Of a DNA stretch of 64,000 nucleotides, positions 26,457-43,939 are shown piece by piece. Each line of letters starts with the position of its first letter. The stretch's first letter is position 1. The notes below the pieces were generated by a model. That model did no database searches. It had not been told where the DNA came from and saw only the letters and a program-made list of their open reading frames with translations. Position numbers and translations under genes: made by a program. The stretch comes from Adineta vaga (Eukaryota > Animalia > Rotifera): contig CP075495.1 in NCBI GenBank assembly GCA_021613535.1, positions 2,480,001 to 2,544,000 of the forward strand, in the 5' to 3' direction.

Positions 26457-28968
26457 ATGTTTCCAAATAATCAACCATCAACGACGACGACGACTGCTAC
26501 AACAAACTTACCATTTACATTTTCTCGTCCAGCTGTAGCACAAGCACATCATCCATTTGGTAATCCATCAGGTTCACAATTATTTCAATTCGGTGGTAAT
26601 AATGTTACACCACCTGTTCCGACTATTTCACCATTTGGTAATCTACCAACAACGGTCAATTCTACGAATACGACAGATTCAAGTATAGAAAACACTAGAA
26701 ACTTGATGATTTGATTGAAATTATCGTTTTTTGTTTTAGATATCGGTGGTATATTTGCATTTAGAAGTAATCAACCTGCACTAGTATCACAACCATCACA
26801 CATTTCTACTATGAATCCTACGGGATCAACAGTTAAATTTGCTCCTGTTTCTGCAGAAGGTAAGTTACCTATCTTCGGTTTTTAAACATCGAATTTATTT
26901 TTAATATTTATTTATAGTATCGGAATATATCCGGGTAATGAATAAAATTGTTACAATAAAAATAAAATTTCATTGTATATGCGCTATGAAAGAATATGTG
27001 CATAAATCAATGGATGAACTTCGACTCGAAGATTATCTTTCAAATCGAAAGTTTCCATCATTCAATAGTATATATCATTCAAACAATGCAACTCTCTTTC
27101 CAAGTATGAATATTCGTTTTACATATTTCTTTTCTTTTCGAATAATCATTCATCAATACTAAAAATTCTTCATATCTTTTTAGGAACAATTCCTATCGTG
27201 CCAACAACAACAGGATCTACCGTAAATAATAATAATAATATCATTGGAGCTGTAGCCAATCCATTCAACATACCTACGACATCCAATAATATTTTCAATC
27301 GAACAGTAACAACATTGCCATGGACACAGAATGCAAATCCAACACCAACAGTTACAACTCAACCATTATTTAGTAAGTATTCATCAAAACAATAAAATCA
27401 AAATTAAATTTCACTTTCGATTTTTTCAAGAATTTCCAACAACCACAAATATTCCAACAACGGTGAATTCAGTAATACCACCAGCTTCAAATATAAATTT
27501 TTTTCCCCAATGGCCTCCAACAACATCTCCTGCTACTAATATCCCGGCATCATCGGCATCAAATACAAACGTGATTGTTCCTACACCTGTTGTAACAATA
27601 GCTGGTACAACATTAATACCTAATATTTTTCAACCATCACTAAATTTAAACAGAACAAATCTAATGACAACAACAACAACAACTAGTGCATCGATTATTA
27701 ATCCAACATCGGTGTTTCAAAATGTTTCTACAACACAAACTCAGCCAATTGTTACATCATCATCAGCTGTAATAAATCGACAACAGTTTCTTACTGCATC
27801 ACTTCTTGATCCGTACGGTAATCGTGGAAGAAAAGACTTTACAAATATGAGTTCAATTTCCTTACCGAAGGAATCCACGACTGAATCAGCTTTATCTACA
27901 GCAATACCAGCCCCCATACCAGTCGTACTTCCTATACAATCAAATTTTCAAAAAACACCCGTATCACATTCATCAATTGATTTAAATTTCAAGTTAAAAC
28001 CCGTTTCATCATCTCCCAACGTACATGAAAATATACAGCCAACAACAGATCAACAACTTGTTGCATCGATCGAATCAAAGAAAAGCACTTTATCAGGAGA
28101 TTTTACCGATGAAGAAGAAATTGTCTTACTTGGTCGTACCAAACTATCAAAACTACGTATATCAAATGATTCGATTAATCAATCGAATACTCTTCGATCA
28201 TCACTTTATCCTGTTAGAAATTTAGCTGAATTGGAGAAATTAACAACTTCATCACCAGTATCATTTCCGATATCAACAACTTCAATTAACACTGAATCTA
28301 CATCATCAAATCCGACTGTTGTAATGAAAAAATCAGAATCATCTGTTAATCCTACAACTTTCCATTTACCTATATTGACTCGTGAAGACTACTACATGAA
28401 ACCAAATCAAACAGAATTAAACACATTATTTAATGATAAAGGTCAATGTATTGTTAAACAATTTACTGTCGGTCATGACAAATATGGTTCAGTGACATTT
28501 TACGGTCAAATCAATGTATCTGGTCTCAATCTTGATGAAATAAGTAAGTTAATTTATATAAAAAGGTTTGATTTGAATCTAACTTATGTATATTTTTTTC
28601 CATTTCTATTCTAGTTCAAATTAATCATCATGAAGTAATTGTATATCCTGATGATACGAATAAACCATCGGTAGGTGAAGAATTAAATCGTCCTGCTCGA
28701 ATTACATTATTCCATGTATATCCAATTGATCGATCTACACGAGTCGAAATCACTGATATGGAACGAATCAAAGCAATGAATTACACTGATTATTTACGTA
28801 ACATAACAAGAAAATTCAATGGAGAATTTGTCAACTATGATTCCGACAATGGATCATGGACATTTATGGTAAGAAAACAAAAGATTTCTTTTCGATTCGA
28901 AATATTGACTATTTGTATTCAATTTTTAGGTAAAACATTTTACACGTTACGGTCTCGATGATAATTAA
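26457..28968 (+). CDS. NUP98: Nup98-like nucleoporin (GLEBS + autoproteolytic domain), without Nup96
   Basis: GLEBS CICAMKEY..KSMDELRLEDY; domain PILTREDYYMKP...FTVGH..YGSV.F...VIVYPDD..KP.VGEELN.PA.ITL...GSWTFM|VKHFTRYGLDDN*. Confidence 0.85.
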
Positions 28969-31648: not shown

Positions 31649-34600
31649 ATGGCTTTTTCTCGACATTCACTTCGACGTGTTCTTGGTGATATGGTTCATC
31701 GACATAATGCTAAAAATGAATCACTTAATACATCTTCGCTTGTCCACGATAAACTTCTCAATCGATCACAAAAGAAAACTGATCGAAATTCAATTATCAG
31801 CAATGGTTCTCTATCGGTATGAATGGTGTTCTTTTTTTCTTCATGTATATATATATTTATATAAATAAACAATAATTATCTGTTAGTTACCTCAAACATG
31901 TTATGAACGATTACATAAAAATGAACGAGAAGTATGTCAATCATTGAATTATCTTGATCAAGTTTTAACACATAATAAACTGGAAATTCTTCCAAGTATT
32001 ATAACATCATTAATTGAAAATATCTTCGACATTGAAAATGTATTAAAAGGAATATTTGAACATGAATCTGAATCATTTAGGTATATGGAAGTTCTTTTAA
32101 GAATTTTCAATTGTTTCAATATGTTCTTATCTTAATTTAGAACACGTTTACTTAATGATGTCTATTCTCTCCTAGCAGATTTAATTGATTGGTCTGATCA
32201 ATTACTTTTGTCAAAAAATCCAATAGATCATGATGATAAATATAAAACAATATCTCATGATTTAATTCAAGCAATTAAAGTAAGATGAAACGGCTTTCTT
32301 CCAAAGACAAAAATGACAATTAATTTTCTCATAGAATTGTATTCTCTATGCAAATGATACATCTTCCCTTCAAAGTGCAGAAACACGTTCTGGTTCTATA
32401 CAAAGTTTTCATTCATTAAATAGGTCAATTTCATTTTTAATAATCAATCATTTACACGAATCTTTCGTTATTTATTTGTAGTGACGAATCTGTACCTGTT
32501 CTTCCTCCAAAACGCGATAAACCTTCAATAAGTTCTTCCACAACCATTACCTCGAATCGAATTCGAACGAATGGTAGTACACATTCAGTTCCAACAAAAA
32601 TCGACCAAGATAAAGATAACGATCAATGTATACAATTAATCGTTGATGATATTAATCAAATTGTCGAAAAATATACACGTGAATTAGATGATGCAATACG
32701 AACAAAAACAACTGTTCGATCTCCATCGATTGAACATCTATCCAATTCAAATTGTTCAATAACAATGACAACACCTGTACGTCATCATAGTATTGATACA
32801 TTATATGAAACTCAAATATCGAAAATCATGAAAAGTACGATTACAAAAACGACAATTAAAACTGGACATGAAATTATTGATCAAAAACAATCATGTCAAC
32901 TTTACAATGAAACTGATTGTTCTATTCAATCACCTAATGGACATTTTCAAACACAAAAATTTACATTTAGTAATCGAGAGAAAATTAATGATGAAGATGA
33001 ACAAGAAAAATCTTTTGTAACTTCTCAACTTCGACAATTGAATATACCGAAAAATGAAGATATCAACAATGAACCACCACCATTGCCACCCAAAAGAAAA
33101 ACAGGTTCTTTTCTTGCTCTATTTCTTTTGAGAAAAGAAAAAATATATCTACTCGGAAACGGAAAAGGAAAATCCTCTTTTCACTCGAACCTTAGCATTC
33201 ATTTTAATAAGATTGTCTTCCGCTTGATTAGATTAAAGTTCGGACGTAATTGTCAAGTTTAATTTCCGTTCTTCTTCTTTTTTTAGCTCGAGCATACATG
33301 TCTTTATTCGATCGATATGATCAAAATGTTGCCGAAGTCTTTCTTCGTGATACATGTTGTATACCAACACCCCAACGTCGTTTCGAAGATCTATTTGATC
33401 AAATGCAAGAACATTTTCAACAAATGCAAATCTTTACCAATACGGATGATTCATTAAAATCGAAAGAAATCAAAATCAAAAATATCGATGAATCTATTCT
33501 TTATAAAAGTCCAATGAAAATTGATTATCACAGTGATCTTTTTCTTGAGAATATTTCTCATCTACTGGTTTTTAATCTAGTAAAATAGTTGATCATTTCT
33601 TTGTATTTCTTTGCATATATCTAATACTTTAGAATGAAGATCCTTCACTTCGTGGTGGTTCTATGGATGCTTTGATTATCCGAGCAACATCACCTGATAA
33701 GAAAGGTGAGATTTCTAAACTTTTCGTCTGTTTTCATAAGTTTGAATATCTTTAGATTTTGTCTATCAAGAAGCATTTCTAACGACCTATCGCACGTTTG
33801 TTTCTCCGAGTGATTTAATTGAGAAATTGATTCAACGATATACATTTTTTACTCAATTTCAAACGAAGAAAAAGATTTCTCGATATGCTTTTTCACTTCT
33901 TATTCGAGTCATCGATGAAATCGAGTACGTTCATCTTCCTTTTCCAACAAAGTTCAAGCATTGATTAATACCATCTGTTTTTGTTTCTTTTCAGCAATGA
34001 ATTAACAGAAGATTTAATGAAATTTCTTTCAAATTTTGTCACGAATTTAATTCGTCATGGTGAACTTCAATTAGGAAAACTCTTACGACGAAAATCTCTT
34101 GAACGTTTTAATCAATTTTCGAATTCTTCAGAACAAATTCAACACGATATTCTCGTTATACAAAATTCGATTTCATCAAAACGAGCAACTCTACTTGATT
34201 TTCATGCGATAGATATTAGTGAACAATTAACTTTATTAGATTCGGAATTATTTCTTAAAATTCAACTATCAGAAATCTTATACATGTCAATTGAAAAAGG
34301 AGAAGATTATTCACCGAATTTAGCAGGATTTACTGAACATTTCAATAATATTTCCTATTGGTAATCATTTTCGATTGATAAAAATCAATATCCATTTGTA
34401 TTTTTCAGGGTACGATCAAGAATTTTAGAACAAAATTCACAAAAACAACGTGAAGTTTATTTTGAAAAATTTCTCAAAATATTAAAAGTAAGTAGTAATC
34501 GAGATAAAGAATTCTATCTTTATCATACAAACAGAAGTTTACTTAACCTAGTTAATATCTCGACGCAGACACCAGACTGATTTTTATGATTACTTGACTA

Positions 34601-35348
34601 ATCTCTCACATTACTATCTAAATAATATGATTTATCTTATGATAATATTAGATATATCCTTGAAGAACTAGTAGATCAATAAGAAAAATATTCTCCATTT
34701 TTTTTCTAGCATTTACGAAGATTGAATAATTTCAATTCTTATCTGGCTATTCTTTCCGCTTTGGATTGTGGTCCATTAAAACGATTACATTGGTCAAAGA
34801 GTATCATTGATGTAAGATTATCTTAATTTTTGTTGTTGTTGTTGTTATCATTTGATTTCATTTAGTCGATATCGGAACATGCGGGACTTATTGATAGTAC
34901 AGGTTCATTTAAAAACTATCGAGAAGCATTGAATGCATCTGTTGGACAACCTTGTATTCCTTATATGTAAGTTACTTTGTATTCCTACTAAAAAAACAAT
35001 CGTCTGTGTTTTGTTTTTACTAGTGGATTGATATTATCGGATTTGACATTCGTTCATATTGGTAATACGGACTATTTACAAGATGGTCGGACTATTAATT
35101 TTTGGAAACGATGGCAACAATTTACTATTTTACATAAACTTCGTTACTGTCGGAAATGGTAAGTGTGAGATGGGATGAAGAGATATTTGATAGAATCATG
35201 AACTTCTTTTTCTAGGGAACATAAATTTACTCGTAACGATCGTATATTGTATTTTTTTAATAATTTCGATGATTATATGAATGAAGATGCACAATGGATT
35301 CAATCGGAGAAGATCAAACCACGACAAAAAGCGAATCCTTATGCTTAA
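31649..35348 (+). CDS. RAPGEF1: Rap guanine nucleotide exchange factor 1 (C3G-like), multi-exon
   Basis: SH3-binding PVLPPK and PPPLPPKR; REM (LRGG..DALII, YQEAFLTTYRTF); CDC25 domain (SEQLTLLD, SPNL..FTEHFNNISYW, NNFNSYLAILSALD, PCIPY, INFWKRWQQF). Confidence 0.9.
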
Positions 35349-35650
35349 AAAATCGAGTTGTTTAATATGAGATCATTAGATATAAATATATCTGTCAGAT
35401 ATTTTTTGTTTGTCTCTTTCTCTTTCTCCTTCACAGTGACAACGAAAATAAATCTTCGTTGAATTGTTTATGTCTATATCTTTGTTTTCTTTTTTTCATC
35501 CTCCTCAATTTAAATCTTTAAACACACACAGTTTTCTTCCTCATTGTTGTTTTTGTTGGATTTTACATATTTTATTGAGTTTAGAAATGAATAATAATGA
35601 TAATAATAAAACGAAAATTTTCTTCTTCATTTAATCAGATTAAGTTTCGA

Positions 35651-36573
35651 ATGAAATCAGCAAAGTTGGCAAATCTCTTACTAAATCGATATTTATCATT
35701 ATCAATCTGTAGGTTCGATGTAGGTAGTATGATATTGGCAAATGGTTGCAATGAATTCTTTTCCTATTCTTATTTTTTTAGAAGAGTAAAATAACAACGA
35801 AAGAGTTACTTGCAGATTATGAAAAGAAACGTGATTTTAATAAAACGACTGAACCAAAACCTACTTATAATGAGAATCAATTAAATAAACATCGCTTTGT
35901 AGTACAAGAACATCATGCATCTAATTTACATTTTGATTTGCGACTTGAATCGAATGGTGTAATGAAAAGGTGGATTTAAAATTTTAATATTCAAAAACTA
36001 AATTTTTCGTTTCTTTTTCTAGTTGGTAGGTGGATGAAAGTATGTGCAATGAATCAGTTGAATATATTTTGAATAGGTGTGTACCAAAAGGACCTAGTTT
36101 AAGTCCTTATAAGAGACGATTAGCTATTATGGTTGAAGATCATCCAATTTCATATATGAATTTTGAAGGAAAGATTCCAGATGGAGAATATGGCGCAGGT
36201 TTACTTATGAGAAATTCAATGTCATATAAACGATGCTTTTGTTCTGATTTTTAAAATAGGTGAAGTACGAATATGGGATAGTGGAACATATGAACCATTG
36301 GAAAATGATGGTGGTGATATAGATGGAAGTATTGAAAAAGGCGAATTAACATTTCGACTCTATGGAAAGAAATTGAAAGGGAAATTTCGTATGATTCGTT
36401 CTCGATTTGGACCAAATCAACCAAAAAAGCAATGGTTATTATTGAAAACGAAAGATGAATTTGCTAATCAATTATTTGTACTTGAACGTATACTTGATTA
36501 TGGTTCTCGACGAGATTTACAAACTATGAAAGAAAAAAAACCGGCATCGACAAACAAAATCAAAATTACCTAA
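35651..36573 (+). CDS. Stand-alone DNA ligase D 3'-phosphoesterase (LigD PE/LigD_N) domain protein, bacterial-type; exons 35651-35719, 35782-35969, 36023-36025, 36077-36198, 36260-36573 (231 aa)
   Basis: Spliced product [112 protein letters not shown] matches the PE domain end to end; all four introns GT-AG, 51-62 nt. Exon 1 is less certain. Confidence 0.93.
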
Positions 36574-37435
36574 ACGAACACCAAAAAAAAACATTCATAA
36601 TTTGCATTTATTAAATCATCTCTTTTTCTAAATCAGTCAACAACTACTAATATTTTAATTGGATCAATCTTGATGAAAAAGACTTTTGTGTAACTGAAAT
36701 ATGTATGTTATTTTGTTTTGACAAACAGGACAAATATCTTCATTGTTAATGTATATTTGGCAATAAGGATACGCAAAGAAATACTCAAAAGCAAGCACGA
36801 CAATTGAGAAATAACCAAAGAAAAAGAGATGAATGAATGAGAGAGAGAGAAAGAGAGATGTCAAACAGTAGAAGAGAAGAAATAAACAATTAACAGATCA
36901 ATGGACGAAAAGAAAGAAGAGAAATGAAACATGATTTTTCTACTAGACGTATGTAATGAATGAAAGAAACATTTTGTACAAACAAAAGAGAAAAAGAAAA
37001 AAAAACAAGAATAATTCAATCAAAGAGATTTATACATCATGTCAATTCCACTTTGGTAAAAATAATGCATGAACAACAACAAATAACAACAATCATACAA
37101 TGTATTGCTGGCTCATCGATGTAAAATTGCACAATAAAGCGCACGCGCAAGAAAGAGTGTGTATTTGTGTATATGTGAAAAGAAAACAAAGGAAAAAAAA
37201 TACTGTCGTATCCTATCTCAATATTCATTTCTAGTTGCACATCATGATCATGTTGACAGAAAGAAAAATACAGGTAAATACTAAAAAAAACGAAAGAAAG
37301 AAACACAAATAGTAAGATTGGTCATGTATGTATAGATTTGAGAAAACAGAAACAAAACAGGGTAAAGAGAAAGGCACCGATAAGCAAATCATAATGTGCG
37401 AAAAAGAAGAAATATATATATTCACAAGAATCGAT

Positions 37436-40400
37436 TCATTGTTGCCAATAAGGTGGTGGGATAGATGGATGCATTTGTTCCATGAAATTTGCACCCTCAA
37501 TTGATGAAGATTCTGTTGGCATTAAGATTTGAGCTTGAGACGTCATTAGACCCATATTTCCATTATTATCTTCAGATTTTTCTTCTTCACGACGACGTAA
37601 ACATGCAGCTTTGGGATTTAAATTTCGTTCTAAAAACAAAATTTATTTAAATCATATTACACCCTCAATTCTTTCTTACCTCGAACTTGATGTTCAAGAT
37701 TTGTTATTAAATTAACTGCTTGTTGTAGTACACCTAATTTCGTAACTGGTTTATCATTACGCATATGAATGGCACACATACGACCGAGTTCTTTAAATGC
37801 ATCATTGATATCTCGAACACGTAATCTACAATGAACAATTGACAAGATTAAGATATTTGCACAAGAAAAAAAAGTTCTTTGTACAAACCGTTCGCGTGCA
37901 TTATTTGCTGCTCGTCGATCTTTTTCTCGACGTTCTCGTTCTTCAGGTGTTTCATTGGGATCAATACTTTCTTCAGATGGTGGTCCACCACGCATATATG
38001 ACAAATTCAAATGACTATTTGGACTTAATGTTAATGAACTACAAGAAATAGATAGAAAATATATAGTTATAAATTCGAATTTTTCTTTTACTTTCGTAAT
38101 TTTGTTGTTGATGAAGATGATGATATAGGACCTGCATGTGATCCACTTGCACCACCGACAGCAATTGTTAATGGTGTAACATTTTCTTCTGACATGTCGT
38201 GTCGAAGATTGAAATCATTTAATTTACATGTAGTTAATTGTGTTGTACCATTGGTTGATGGTGGTTTATTTTCAACATTAACTTTAACTTTGTCAAGACA
38301 TTCGAGTTTTAAATCAGGATTCATCGTTGTTAAATTTGCATCATTCGATGATGTCGATGACGATGAAGACGCTGGATTTCCATCTACAATAGAGTTATAA
38401 AGAATATGTGTTTGTTTTTTTCCAATGAAAATCAATTTACAATTTAAGTATGGATCATGATGTCGATTTCGTGCTGATGTATCCGATGTTGTTGTTGTTG
38501 CTGTTGTTGTTGTTGGATGAGTGAGAAAAGTCGAATATGGTCCATTGGAATGTGGATGATGATAGCCAGGATAATAATGATGGAAATCATTTGGTCGAAA
38601 ATTATCATCAACATCTAATCTTGGTGGCTAAAAAATAGTAGATAAATATGAATTTTAGTTCTATGAGAAAAAGAAATTGAATAAGTAGAAGAAAAAAAAC
38701 AAAAATCTAAGTCCCATTTTCCCCAAAATCATATATAGATATAGACAAACCTCGTTTAAATTCAATAAACAGTAGGAATCATCAGATAGATCAATTAAAG
38801 ATGTCTGATATTCGAATGTGAAAAAGAAAGATGTAGTTTTTACGAAAGTCTTCAAAGAATTCAAAAAGAAAAGATACTTACAAGTGGATGATAAGTTTGT
38901 GCTGCATTGATCCATGGTTGACTAGATCCTTTGAAATAGGAAGGAAAAAAAACATGCATATTCAATGATTCTATTTCAAAAGATTTCTTTCTTCAACCAA
39001 CATACCATTTACTGATGGTGATGCGACAGGTGTCGATGCTGATGTCGAATATGGATGTTCATTTGGATAAATCTAAATAAACAATCGAGTTTGAATTTTT
39101 TTCTCTTTAATGATTTGCATCTGATATCATACAGATTGTAATGCTTTGCCAAGTGTTTCTCCAGTTTGTACTGTTTGTTCATTGCCATTACTCGTATATG
39201 ATGTTGGTGGTTGTGGTCGAAAACTTGCCATTGGTGGTAAACAGGTACCATTGGCGTCAGTAAATGTTCCATGTTCATTAGGAAGATAAGTTCCTGGTGG
39301 TCCTAACCATCCATGAGCATTTTGACCATCTATTCAATGATAAAATTAACATCTGAAGAATCAATTTAGTTCGTCTTACCAACAAAATAATTGCTTTCAT
39401 TTCCATAGACTGATTTTCCTGGTGGATATCGTGCTGAATTTTCTGGATTATAATCCTCTCCTGTATAAACCTAATATAAAGAAAAAAGAACGATTGTATA
39501 AGAGATCGATAACAAATGTCTTTAACATATTAACATCTAACTTGTTTTGATTGATCTCATGTGTAAATACTTTCCAACAAATCACACAAGTACTCATCTG
39601 ATTATAGATTCCATACTAACTAAATTAATTCGAATGAGTTTTCTTTTTCTCTATTCTGATCTTTCTTTTCTAAGAGAAACATCGAAGAATAACACATTTG
39701 TCAGTAATAAATATCGCTCTATAAATATACGTATCTCGATCGAATGAAGTTTTGATGATGACTTCATGAAAGAGAAAACATGCCGTATACGTTTGCTCAT
39801 CACTAAAATCAACAGTCTCAGATTGACGACGTATCAATTCGATGAAGAGAAGAAAAGAAGAAGAAGAAAAAACTTCGATCACCCACTGATTTCTATGTTG
39901 GCTAATCAAGAGAAAAAGGTTCGTTTGTTTGTGCTCACTCGGCACGAGATCAAAGGACGTGCGATCGCAATCCATGCTGACATTCACATCGGCTCGATTG
40001 AGCAAATGAGAATGTGTTGATTAGCATTATCTTTTTCTTCTCGATTCGATCAATTGCTAATATAGACACATACATACATACATACATATGAAAAAAGAAA
40101 AGAAACCCTTTCGAGTTTTTCGTTGCATATTTTATGTCAAGGTGTCAAATTTAATCCCAAAGATCTTTTCGCTTTTCTCTCAATCAAATAAAACAATACC
40201 TGATACGATGGCCGTGAATAGTAAAACATTTATTAAAAGTGAAATGAATTTATCACAGTTGGTAGATGATGTCAAAATGAGAAATGTGTTTAATTGACTT
40301 GTAATTATTGTGTCAAATAAACTCGATGTATAACATTGCTTGAGAAGAAAAAAAACCCGAAGAAAGTCGATCGATATAGAAGACCTTTCACTGGAACAGT

Positions 40401-43425: not shown

Positions 43426-43939
43426 ATGATGTCGCTTACCGAAGAACGTATCAATGAAATGAAAGAAATCTTTTCCATGGTTGATGATGATGGTGATGGT
43501 TCTATCACACGAATTCAACTTGGTATGTGTCTTCGAGCAATGCAATATTCAATCAGTAATCATGAAATAAATGATCTAATGAAAAAATTTGATTCGGAAA
43601 AAAGCGATCGAATTAATTTTCCTCAATTATTACAAATCATTGCTGCTACTCAACAACCGAACTTATCAAAACAAACACAAACCATTCTTTCTGCTTTGAA
43701 ATTATTCGATACGGAAAATGATGGTAAGAAAAATTTGATTTATTTTCGTAATTTTCTTTTGTTGTTTATTTGTTTACATAGAAACAATATCTGAGAATGA
43801 TTTTCGTTTTCTAATGCAACAAACAGGCGAACCATTATCGAAAGATTCAGTCGATGATATGATTAAATCAACTGATGCTCGTACAAAAAATGGTCGAATA
43901 CAATATCGTAAACTTGTTTCAACAATTATTCATTTGTAG
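43426..43939 (+). CDS. Calmodulin-like / myosin light chain-like EF-hand protein (2 exons)
   Basis: LTEERINEMKEIFSMVDDDGDGSIT..LG..LRA; four partly degenerate EF-hands; ~150 aa. Confidence 0.8.

Follow-up and report, generated by a model that had tools for sequence, protein, structure and literature searches.

The 3'-phosphoesterase (PE) domain of bacterial LigD is known from Pseudomonas aeruginosa (3N9B, 3N9D and 2LJ6), where it is fused to the ligase and the polymerase. PE enzymes act on 3' ribonucleotides, an activity distinct from that of PNKP, the usual 3'-phosphatase/5'-kinase of animals, which is unrelated to PE in fold and chemistry. Archaeal PE proteins (3P43, 3P4H and 5DMP) have a single domain that is not fused to a ligase, and 5DMP belongs, according to its PDB title, to an archaeal NHEJ set. 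In bacterial split operons the PE gene adjoins ligase and PrimPol genes.

No other animals have been studied as well as bdelloid rotifers with regard to large-scale gene acquisition and to their extreme tolerance of DNA breakage. In Adineta vaga, Ligase E, Fpg, UVDE and AlkD are non-metazoan repair genes that, like the gene described here, are fixed in bdelloids (PMC10665377, PMC6264785). Hecox-Lea and Mark Welch 2018 (PMC6264785) reported four acquired repair genes, including Fpg, UVDE and AlkD, and PE is not named there. Ligase E is very strongly induced, with a log2 fold change of >7, and was functionally tested (Nicolas et al. 2023, PMC10665377), whereas PE is weakly expressed.

The rotifer PE shares its fold, catalytic residues and HMM family with the PE domain of P. 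aeruginosa LigD. It differs in being unfused, in a genome without bacterial Ku, and in having introns, a micro-exon, an added N-terminal exon and an ILDYGSRR motif with a tail. It resembles archaeal PE in being a single domain without a ligase, and sequence and fold matches to these proteins are strong, but archaeal PE is more distant in sequence and the rotifer has no prokaryotic NHEJ partner. The closest proteins in the tree are PE proteins of bacterial split operons (P0159, P0157, P0161 and P0183, including Bacteroidota and Ca. Kapabacteria bins), which are of similar length and 55-60% identical to the rotifer PE. P0005, P0157 and P0192 also share the C-terminal Y-G-S motif and basic tail. 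The bacterial genes adjoin ligase and PrimPol genes, whereas the rotifer retained PE alone. We consider it probable that the A. vaga gene is an acquired and domesticated bacterial PE, and that its product works as a Mn-dependent 3'-phosphoesterase with host polymerases and ligases.

Results and Discussion

Structure of the PE gene

The window, that is, the whole 64-kb stretch of A. vaga DNA that was analysed, contains a five-exon gene at 35651-36573 on the + strand. The exon model, derived from the sequence, gives a CDS of 696 nt encoding 231 amino acids and a stop codon, and the four introns (62, 53, 51 and 61 nt) are all GT-AG. The initial annotation had proposed the same 231-aa model with four introns, and the sequence, exon-wise HMM matches and transcript junctions confirmed it. 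According to transcript contigs the mRNA spans about 35637 to 36687. The PE family has one locus in the A. vaga assembly (100.8 Mb, 6 contigs). The features of the locus and its surroundings are as follows.

35215..35348, + strand: last exon and stop codon of the upstream RasGEF-domain gene (spliced transcript contigs; RasGEF Pfam match on an upstream exon)
35330..36764, no strand: 1.4-kb segment containing the entire PE gene, of which only about 160 nt are present at the ohnologous locus G000:C5
35637..35650, + strand: mRNA 5' end and short 5' UTR (transcript contig of run X12 begins at 35637, with AG at 35637-35638)
35651..35719, + strand: exon 1, ATG and 23-codon N-terminal extension (junction 35719>35782 in runs X1 and X12)
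35720..35781, + strand: intron 1, 62 nt, GT-AG (sequence and transcript contigs)
35782..35969, + strand: exon 2, N-terminal part of the PE domain with KRDF, EP, QEHH and HFDLR motifs (TIGR02777 positions 1-53, E = 2.7e-17)
35970..36022, + strand: intron 2, 53 nt, GT-AG (sequence and transcript contigs)
36023..36025, + strand: exon 3, 3-nt micro-exon TTG (three extra letters in transcripts; conserved in relatives)
36026..36076, + strand: intron 3, 51 nt, GT-AG (sequence; absent in Didymodactylos carnosus)
36077..36198, + strand: exon 4, VPKGPS and the EDHPISY segment with the counterparts of E82, H84 and Y88 (TIGR02777 positions 57-95, E = 9e-17)
36199..36259, + strand: intron 4, 61 nt, GT-AG, phase 1 within a Gly codon (junction 36198>36260; position common with D. 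carnosus)
36260..36573, + strand: exon 5, C-terminal part of the PE domain, ILDYGSRR motif and basic tail (TIGR02777 positions 98-156; stop codon at 36571-36573)
36574..36687, + strand: 3' UTR (X1 transcript contig ends at 36687)
37657..38010, - strand: bHLH exon of the convergent E-protein gene, E2A/TCF4 type (PF00010; E2-alpha and TCF4 PDB matches of about 1e-16)

Automatic models of the bdelloid PE gene are already present in NCBI and UniProt. P0238, the public A. vaga model, is a 230-aa 'hypothetical protein I4U23_006552 [Adineta vaga]'; its residues 1-23 are 100% identical to the translation of exon 1. The N-terminal extension encoded by this exon is conserved in A. ricciae, in Rotaria and in P0175, a protein from an mRNA contig of a related bdelloid, and is absent from bacterial PE proteins and from D. 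carnosus. It is rich in Lys, Arg, Leu and Ser with hardly any acidic residues, and ends in a conserved C-R-F/L-D/E. At the other end of the protein, the ILDYGSRR motif of exon 5 lies beyond the TIGR02777 model and is conserved at the C-terminus in the family alignment. Both the added N-terminal exon and this C-terminal motif may be relevant to targeting or binding.

Family identity, catalytic residues and predicted fold

Exons were searched singly, and P0238 and P0175 were used as full-length stand-ins. The translations of the three large exons match TIGR02777 (LigD_PE_dom) in order, at positions 1-53, 57-95 and 98-156, with E values of 1e-12 to 1e-17, and they also match Pfam PF13298. P0238, which is 100% identical to the translations of exons 1, 2, 4 and 5, scored 195.9 bits with TIGR02777 (cut-off 144) and 124 bits with PF13298 (cut-off 31.1), so both curated cut-offs were exceeded in the HMM comparison that the initial annotation had recommended.

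In phmmer alignments with 2LJ6 and 3N9B, the residues corresponding to R14, D15, E21, Q40, H42, H48, D50, R52, E82, H84 and Y88 of P. aeruginosa LigD PE are identical, and every catalytic motif that had been read from the DNA beforehand aligned. Counterparts of the metal-binding His42, His48 and Asp50 and of Arg52, His84 and Tyr88 (P. aeruginosa numbering) are therefore all present, and the same catalytic residues are kept in all listed bdelloid orthologs. The AlphaFold model of the ortholog P0175, whose sequence is 64% identical to that of the A. vaga protein, reached a pLDDT of >90 in the core. It superimposes on 3N9B and 3N9D with an rmsd of 1.0-1.4 A, a target TM-score of 0.82-0.86 and 48-49% identity, and Foldseek matched it to 3N9B, 3N9D, 5DMP, 3P43 and 3P4H with E values of 1e-15 to 1e-12. 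The N-terminal extension (a low-confidence helix) and the C-terminal tail are poorly predicted in this model. Profile and residue comparisons confirmed that the predicted product of the A. vaga gene is a stand-alone LigD PE domain.

The 3-nt micro-exon

The micro-exon TTG completes the Ser and Trp codons of a conserved K-S-W motif, and this Ser-Trp pair fills exactly the two TIGR02777 positions between exons 2 and 4. Transcripts report the junction 35971>36076, which skips 104 nt, whereas a direct join of exon 2 to exon 4 would skip 107. Three extra letters are therefore retained in the transcripts, and the mismatch pattern fits TTG. The arrangement AG|TTG|GTAGG is kept within otherwise diverged introns of the related contigs L008 and L010, and L011 has a GTAAG variant. 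K-S-W was also read in two different bdelloid transcripts, with a 1,234-nt intronless contig, L103, coming from a JGI sample.

Across 248 family members, the Ser column holds S in 237 and the Trp column W in 234. Arg and a gap stand in these columns in ten of the 248, and these are the ten public Adineta and Rotaria models. P0238 is one example, with Arg in place of Ser-Trp because the public model fuses exon 2 straight to exon 4. Ser-Trp is missing from all ten retrieved models because gene predictors skip the micro-exon. A protein expressed from the database sequences of Adineta or Rotaria would thus be defective, since it would miss a nearly invariant Ser-Trp. In D. carnosus there is one intron two bases upstream of the position of A. 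vaga intron 2, and the second intron is absent. The micro-exon accordingly arose when a new intron was gained 3 nt downstream of an existing one.

Expression, linkage to host genes and spliced leader

Transcript contigs of three runs from three studies were compared with positions 34501-37300 of the window. Spliced transcripts, on whose existence the initial annotation depended, are present in all three studies, and the junctions 35719>35782 and 36198>36260 were seen in the contigs. In a fourth run, a DNA contig extends without splicing over 35183-36976 and includes the last RasGEF exon, PE and the 3' UTR of the E-protein gene. RasGEF transcripts stop at 35524-35606, and the contig of the convergent gene starts at 36696. 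The three packed genes lie on separate transcript contigs, except in X12, where one contig merges PE and the convergent gene.

L103, an mRNA contig of a related bdelloid, has a 22-nt sequence joined 10 nt before the ATG, which we take to be the published bdelloid spliced leader. The A. vaga genome contains 42 copies of this sequence, many in clustered, paired arrays, and the control contains 0. In A. vaga, the X12 contig has four unaligned letters ahead of 35637, and the AG context is very similar to that of L103. From this comparison, the A. vaga PE mRNA likely receives a spliced leader at the AG at 35637-35638.

The PE CDS has a GC content of 32%, with 18% at third positions, compared with 30% for the whole 64-kb window. 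This agrees with the host-like AT content that had been noted for the gene. Bacterial contigs with close relatives have GC contents of 44% (L014) and 51% (L015).

Bacterial contamination or an assembly artefact could account for a sequence whose closest non-rotifer relatives, among the matches listed, are all bacterial, and the gene carries no HGT flag in the table of Moris et al. 2024. The gene has, however, four host-sized GT-AG introns and a host-like third-position composition; its splicing is seen in three studies, and in a separate dataset one DNA contig runs from host gene through PE to host gene. The same gene order in three other species and the spliced leader on the mRNA of a relative also contradict contamination. 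Introns, splicing, linkage and synteny rule this explanation out, and we give it practically no weight. The contamination argument of the initial annotation is upheld above all by the spliced transcripts and by the DNA contig that joins both host neighbours.

Neighbouring genes and the ohnologous locus

The stop codon of the upstream RasGEF gene lies 302 nt before the PE ATG. The initial annotation called this neighbour RAPGEF1; Pfam supports the RasGEF domain, but the RAPGEF1 identity was not confirmed, and the best PDB matches are SOS proteins. For the convergent gene, its naming as an E-protein gene holds, with a PF00010 match and E2-alpha and TCF4 as the best PDB matches.

Three other bdelloid-like contigs show the genes in the same RasGEF-PE-HLH order, so that the synteny expected in related genomes was found in three other species. 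One of these contigs has a GC content of 46% and a nucleoporin-domain gene (Pfam Nucleoporin2) upstream. In the short contigs of D. carnosus, no RasGEF or HLH was found within 6 kb of the PE gene.

The ohnolog was compared by blastn of window positions 33500-38500 against L102. On contig 5, where the ohnologous region lies, the same pair of RasGEF and HLH genes again converges, and tblastn detected no trace of PE at L102. The absence of the PE segment from the ohnolog means that 1.4 kb were inserted into one ohnolog or else were cleanly lost from its counterpart.

Distribution and origin of PE in bdelloids

PE orthologs were counted in three Adineta species, four Rotaria species and D. carnosus, and the gene is common to all sampled bdelloids. 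The named orthologs are from A. ricciae, A. steineri, Rotaria sordida, R. magnacalcarata, R. sp. Silwood-1, R. sp. Silwood-2 and Didymodactylos carnosus. D. carnosus adds the deepest divergence known in the class (Nowell et al. 2021). A phase-1 intron in the Gly codon before E-V-R is common to D. carnosus and A. vaga, and this shared position supports orthology and an early intron gain. Comparison of these orthologs shows the transfer to predate the deepest known bdelloid split.

The main tree, a careful maximum-likelihood analysis, included 73 PE domains with nine bdelloid rows, and supports are given as ultrafast bootstrap/SH-aLRT. The nine bdelloid rows form one clade (100/94), and their sister group is the bacterial pair P0158/P0159 (94/83). 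The next clade out (97/90) includes proteins labelled by NCBI as Bacteroidota or Candidatus Kapabacteria. The 73-domain tree agrees with a larger, quick tree of 132 rows. Bacterial operons of the PE-ligase-PrimPol type encode P0159 (contig L107) and P0157 (L015), and the gene for P0005 has a PrimPol gene nearby.

In the phylogeny with bacterial PE proteins that had been called for, bdelloids are thus nested inside bacterial sequences. The gene is nested in non-metazoan sequences, linked to metazoan genes and intron-bearing, as is expected of horizontally acquired genes. The old horizontal transfer proposed initially is supported by the nesting in the tree, the introns shared with D. carnosus and the synteny in three species. 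The sequence comparisons as a whole point to a bdelloid-wide gene derived from one old bacterial transfer. The donor most likely had a split LigD operon of the Bacteroidota or Kapabacteria kind, an assignment based on a small number of named metagenome bins, with moderate support for the deep branches.

According to the initial annotation, some eukaryotes have stand-alone PE proteins. PE could therefore be an old eukaryotic gene that was lost from most animals, or it could have come from a fungus or protist and not directly from a bacterium. Many rows near the bdelloid clade are metagenome proteins without names, which leaves some room for such an origin. Yet the clade is nested in proteins from contigs with bacterial operons, and among the named proteins in the best 120 of 2,090 matches no eukaryotes other than bdelloids occur. 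Relatives were drawn from the best 120 to 150 matches, and absence from other animals was judged within those. The ohnologous locus, which is cleanly without the gene, also disagrees with an old eukaryotic gene. We regard a eukaryotic origin as very improbable.

Under a direct bacterial origin, the gene was taken up once from a bacterium that most likely had a split LigD operon, of which the first gene, PE, was alone retained. In the course of domestication it took on an AT-rich composition like that of the host, a place between the RasGEF and E-protein genes and four short introns. A first exon with the N-terminal extension was added, and a spliced leader was most likely acquired. The PE locus in this way illustrates how a bacterial gene becomes an animal gene stepwise, with placement between host genes, loss of operon partners and gain of introns. 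The emergence of a micro-exon of 3 nt, the added first exon and likely trans-splicing belong to the same series of steps.

The ratio dN/dS between species is about 0.34, and is <0.1 where synonymous sites were saturated. The pattern of substitution shows the PE gene to be under selective constraint. A neutral, decaying passenger that is transcribed without a selected function would agree with the low expression, with the branch of the A. vaga copy being longer than those of all other Adineta and Rotaria proteins, and with a dN/dS of 0.34 that is not very low. This ratio is, however, well below 1. Furthermore, the reading frame, catalytic residues, intron positions and the 3-nt micro-exon have persisted through the most ancient splits known among bdelloids, and a decaying passenger is hardly credible.

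Bacterial partners and proposed function

Profile searches of the whole A. vaga genome found no match to TIGR02772 for bacterial-type Ku and none to TIGR02778 for the LigD polymerase/primase. The whole-genome matches to TIGR02779, for a LigD-type ligase, were weak, corresponded to generic ATP-ligase domains and were all far below the cut-off. The initial annotation had noted the lack of Ku, polymerase and ligase modules in the window, and this extends to the whole genome. With neither bacterial Ku nor a LigD partner in the genome, the enzyme would act alone and hand ends to host polymerases and ligases.

The product is predicted to form a PE beta-barrel with an intact metal-binding His-His-Asp triad and an intact phosphate site of Arg, His and Tyr. 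By analogy with the P. aeruginosa and archaeal PE enzymes, it would be a manganese-dependent 3'-phosphoesterase. At nicks, gaps and broken ends it would remove 3'-phosphates and trim 3'-terminal ribonucleotides, leaving 3'-OH ends. Both PNKP and PE are expected to convert a 3'-phosphate end to a 3'-OH, and PE may act in parallel with the host PNKP. PE could in this way be an extra end-healing route for a tolerant animal. If so, a bacterial end-healing enzyme would join the few acquired bdelloid repair genes, above all Ligase E, that have been shown to matter. A. vaga has PNKP in four copies (Hecox-Lea and Mark Welch 2018, PMC6264785), and PE may therefore be redundant. PNKP is over-represented after irradiation in A. 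vaga (PMC6264785, PMC10665377).

In Moris et al. 2024, the gene FUN_008691 is listed as ligD (K01971, PF13298) with an empty HGT column. Since the genome has only one PE locus, FUN_008691 is this PE gene. Its mean normalised count is about 31, compared with about 5,500 for Ligase E, and Table S8 of that study gives it log2 fold changes of 0.63 (2.5 h), 0.96 (8 h) and 1.13 (24 h) after desiccation and X-rays. According to Moris et al. 2024, then, expression of PE is low, and its induction after desiccation and X-rays is small (about 2-fold) and late. R. magnacalcarata is obligately aquatic and non-desiccating (Nowell et al. 2021), and it keeps an intact PE copy. Selection on PE is thus not tied to desiccation alone.

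These last observations also fit a different role, in which PE was kept for healing RNA 3' ends or ribonucleotide ends together with acquired RNA ligases, or acts in mitochondria by means of its N-terminal extension. The extension encoded by exon 1 is basic and nearly without acidic residues, is conserved between Adineta and Rotaria, and is modelled as a low-confidence helix. Enzymes of the PE family act on 3' ribonucleotides. RNA ligases of HGT origin are induced by radiation in A. vaga (Moris et al. 2024), and both the weak induction of PE after irradiation and its retention in a non-desiccating species would agree with such a role. On the other hand, the computed charge and amphipathicity of the extension are crude measures that decide nothing on targeting, and D. 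carnosus has no extension. Most orthologs also have basic C-terminal tails, which suit nuclear import or DNA binding. An RNA or mitochondrial role is unlikely in our view, and we favour a 3'-phosphoesterase acting on DNA ends. A more detailed version, which we put forward only tentatively and consider doubtful, is that PE is a second, mechanistically distinct route for healing 3'-phosphate and 3'-ribonucleotide ends that feeds host or acquired ligases such as Ligase E, that alternative 5' ends, including or omitting the N-terminal extension, might direct it to two compartments such as nucleus and mitochondrion, and that its loss would measurably lower recovery from radiation or desiccation.

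In the literature on bdelloid LigD or phosphoesterase, we found no paper analysing this gene, only one mention and one table row in Moris et al. 2024, with no trace of the gene in the supplementary material of Nicolas et al. 2023 (PMC10665377). The best BLAST matches given for FUN_008691 are from Algoriphagus and Chryseobacterium (Moris et al. 2024). The single mention in the text of that study reads 'Ligase D in NHEJ'. Since the gene encodes no ligase domain, calling it 'Ligase D' is misleading.

Gene models and protein features

The PE gene is named 'Ligase D', after KEGG K01971, in the main text and Table S8 of Moris et al. 2024 (PMC10809525), and the gene so labelled contains no ligase domain. 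The HGT column of the same study is blank for this gene, yet the best hits listed are all bacterial. Three parts of the gene bear on its protein product:

35651-35719 (+), exon 1, encoding an N-terminal extension
36023-36025 (+), 3-nt micro-exon
36460-36530 (+), C-terminal motif of 13 residues

None of the ten public PE models from Adineta and Rotaria (P0238, from A. vaga, and P0163, P0167, P0180, P0185-P0187, P0189, P0191 and P0193) includes the micro-exon. These ten models read K-R where the PE family has K-S-W. Each therefore falls short by one residue, and the Trp that it lacks is almost invariant. The extension encoded by exon 1 comprises 23 amino acids, among which Lys, Arg, Leu and Ser are abundant and a single residue is acidic, and it ends in C-R-F-D. 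It is kept in Adineta and Rotaria and is missing from bacteria and D. carnosus. The extension looks like a candidate organelle presequence or interaction motif. The C-terminal motif lies past the end of the LigD PE domain model TIGR02777 and is common to bdelloids and their nearest relatives among bacteria. In most of these proteins it is followed by a basic tail.

Gene neighbourhood

An ohnologous pair of RasGEF and E-protein genes is found on contig 5 of the A. vaga genome (C5:14764000-14772000), with DNA identity of approximately 72-77% to the pair in the window. The 3' ends of the two genes in the contig 5 pair are separated by only approximately 160 nt at the place where the PE gene stands in the window. 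The gene order nucleoporin-RasGEF-PE-HLH is the same as that of the window in a rotifer-like 454-kb contig (L011, ENA ERZ26165376), whose GC content of 46% is far higher than the 29-34% of sequenced bdelloids. Two open frames in the window were classified by eye:

27331-28614, long open frame, nucleoporin-like
43426-43794, open frame, EF-hand-like

A Pfam Nucleoporin2 gene occupies the relative position of the first frame in L011, and the counterpart of the second in another related contig carrying the PE gene (L008) is a downstream EF-hand gene. With these counterparts, synteny around the PE gene may reach past its immediate neighbours.

Spliced leader and possible isoforms

In a metatranscriptome-like contig of 1,234 nt, the 22-nt bdelloid spliced-leader sequence is located shortly before the start codon of PE (L103:436-466). 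This contig is chimeric and holds two PE transcripts, the second one inverted. In the second transcript (L103:390-445, minus strand), 11 nt of the 3' end of the leader are joined within exon 1, so that translation would begin at the Met of exon 2, without the N-terminal extension. This transcript hints at long and short PE isoforms produced via alternative trans-splice sites. Alternatively, the join may have arisen as an artefact of the cDNA or of the assembly. The matching site in A. vaga is CG, not AG. The A. vaga genome itself contains the 22-nt sequence at 42 sites, in clustered arrays such as C5:9884356-9925969, which are presumably SL RNA gene clusters. Many of these arrays contain facing pairs of copies, approximately 155 nt apart.
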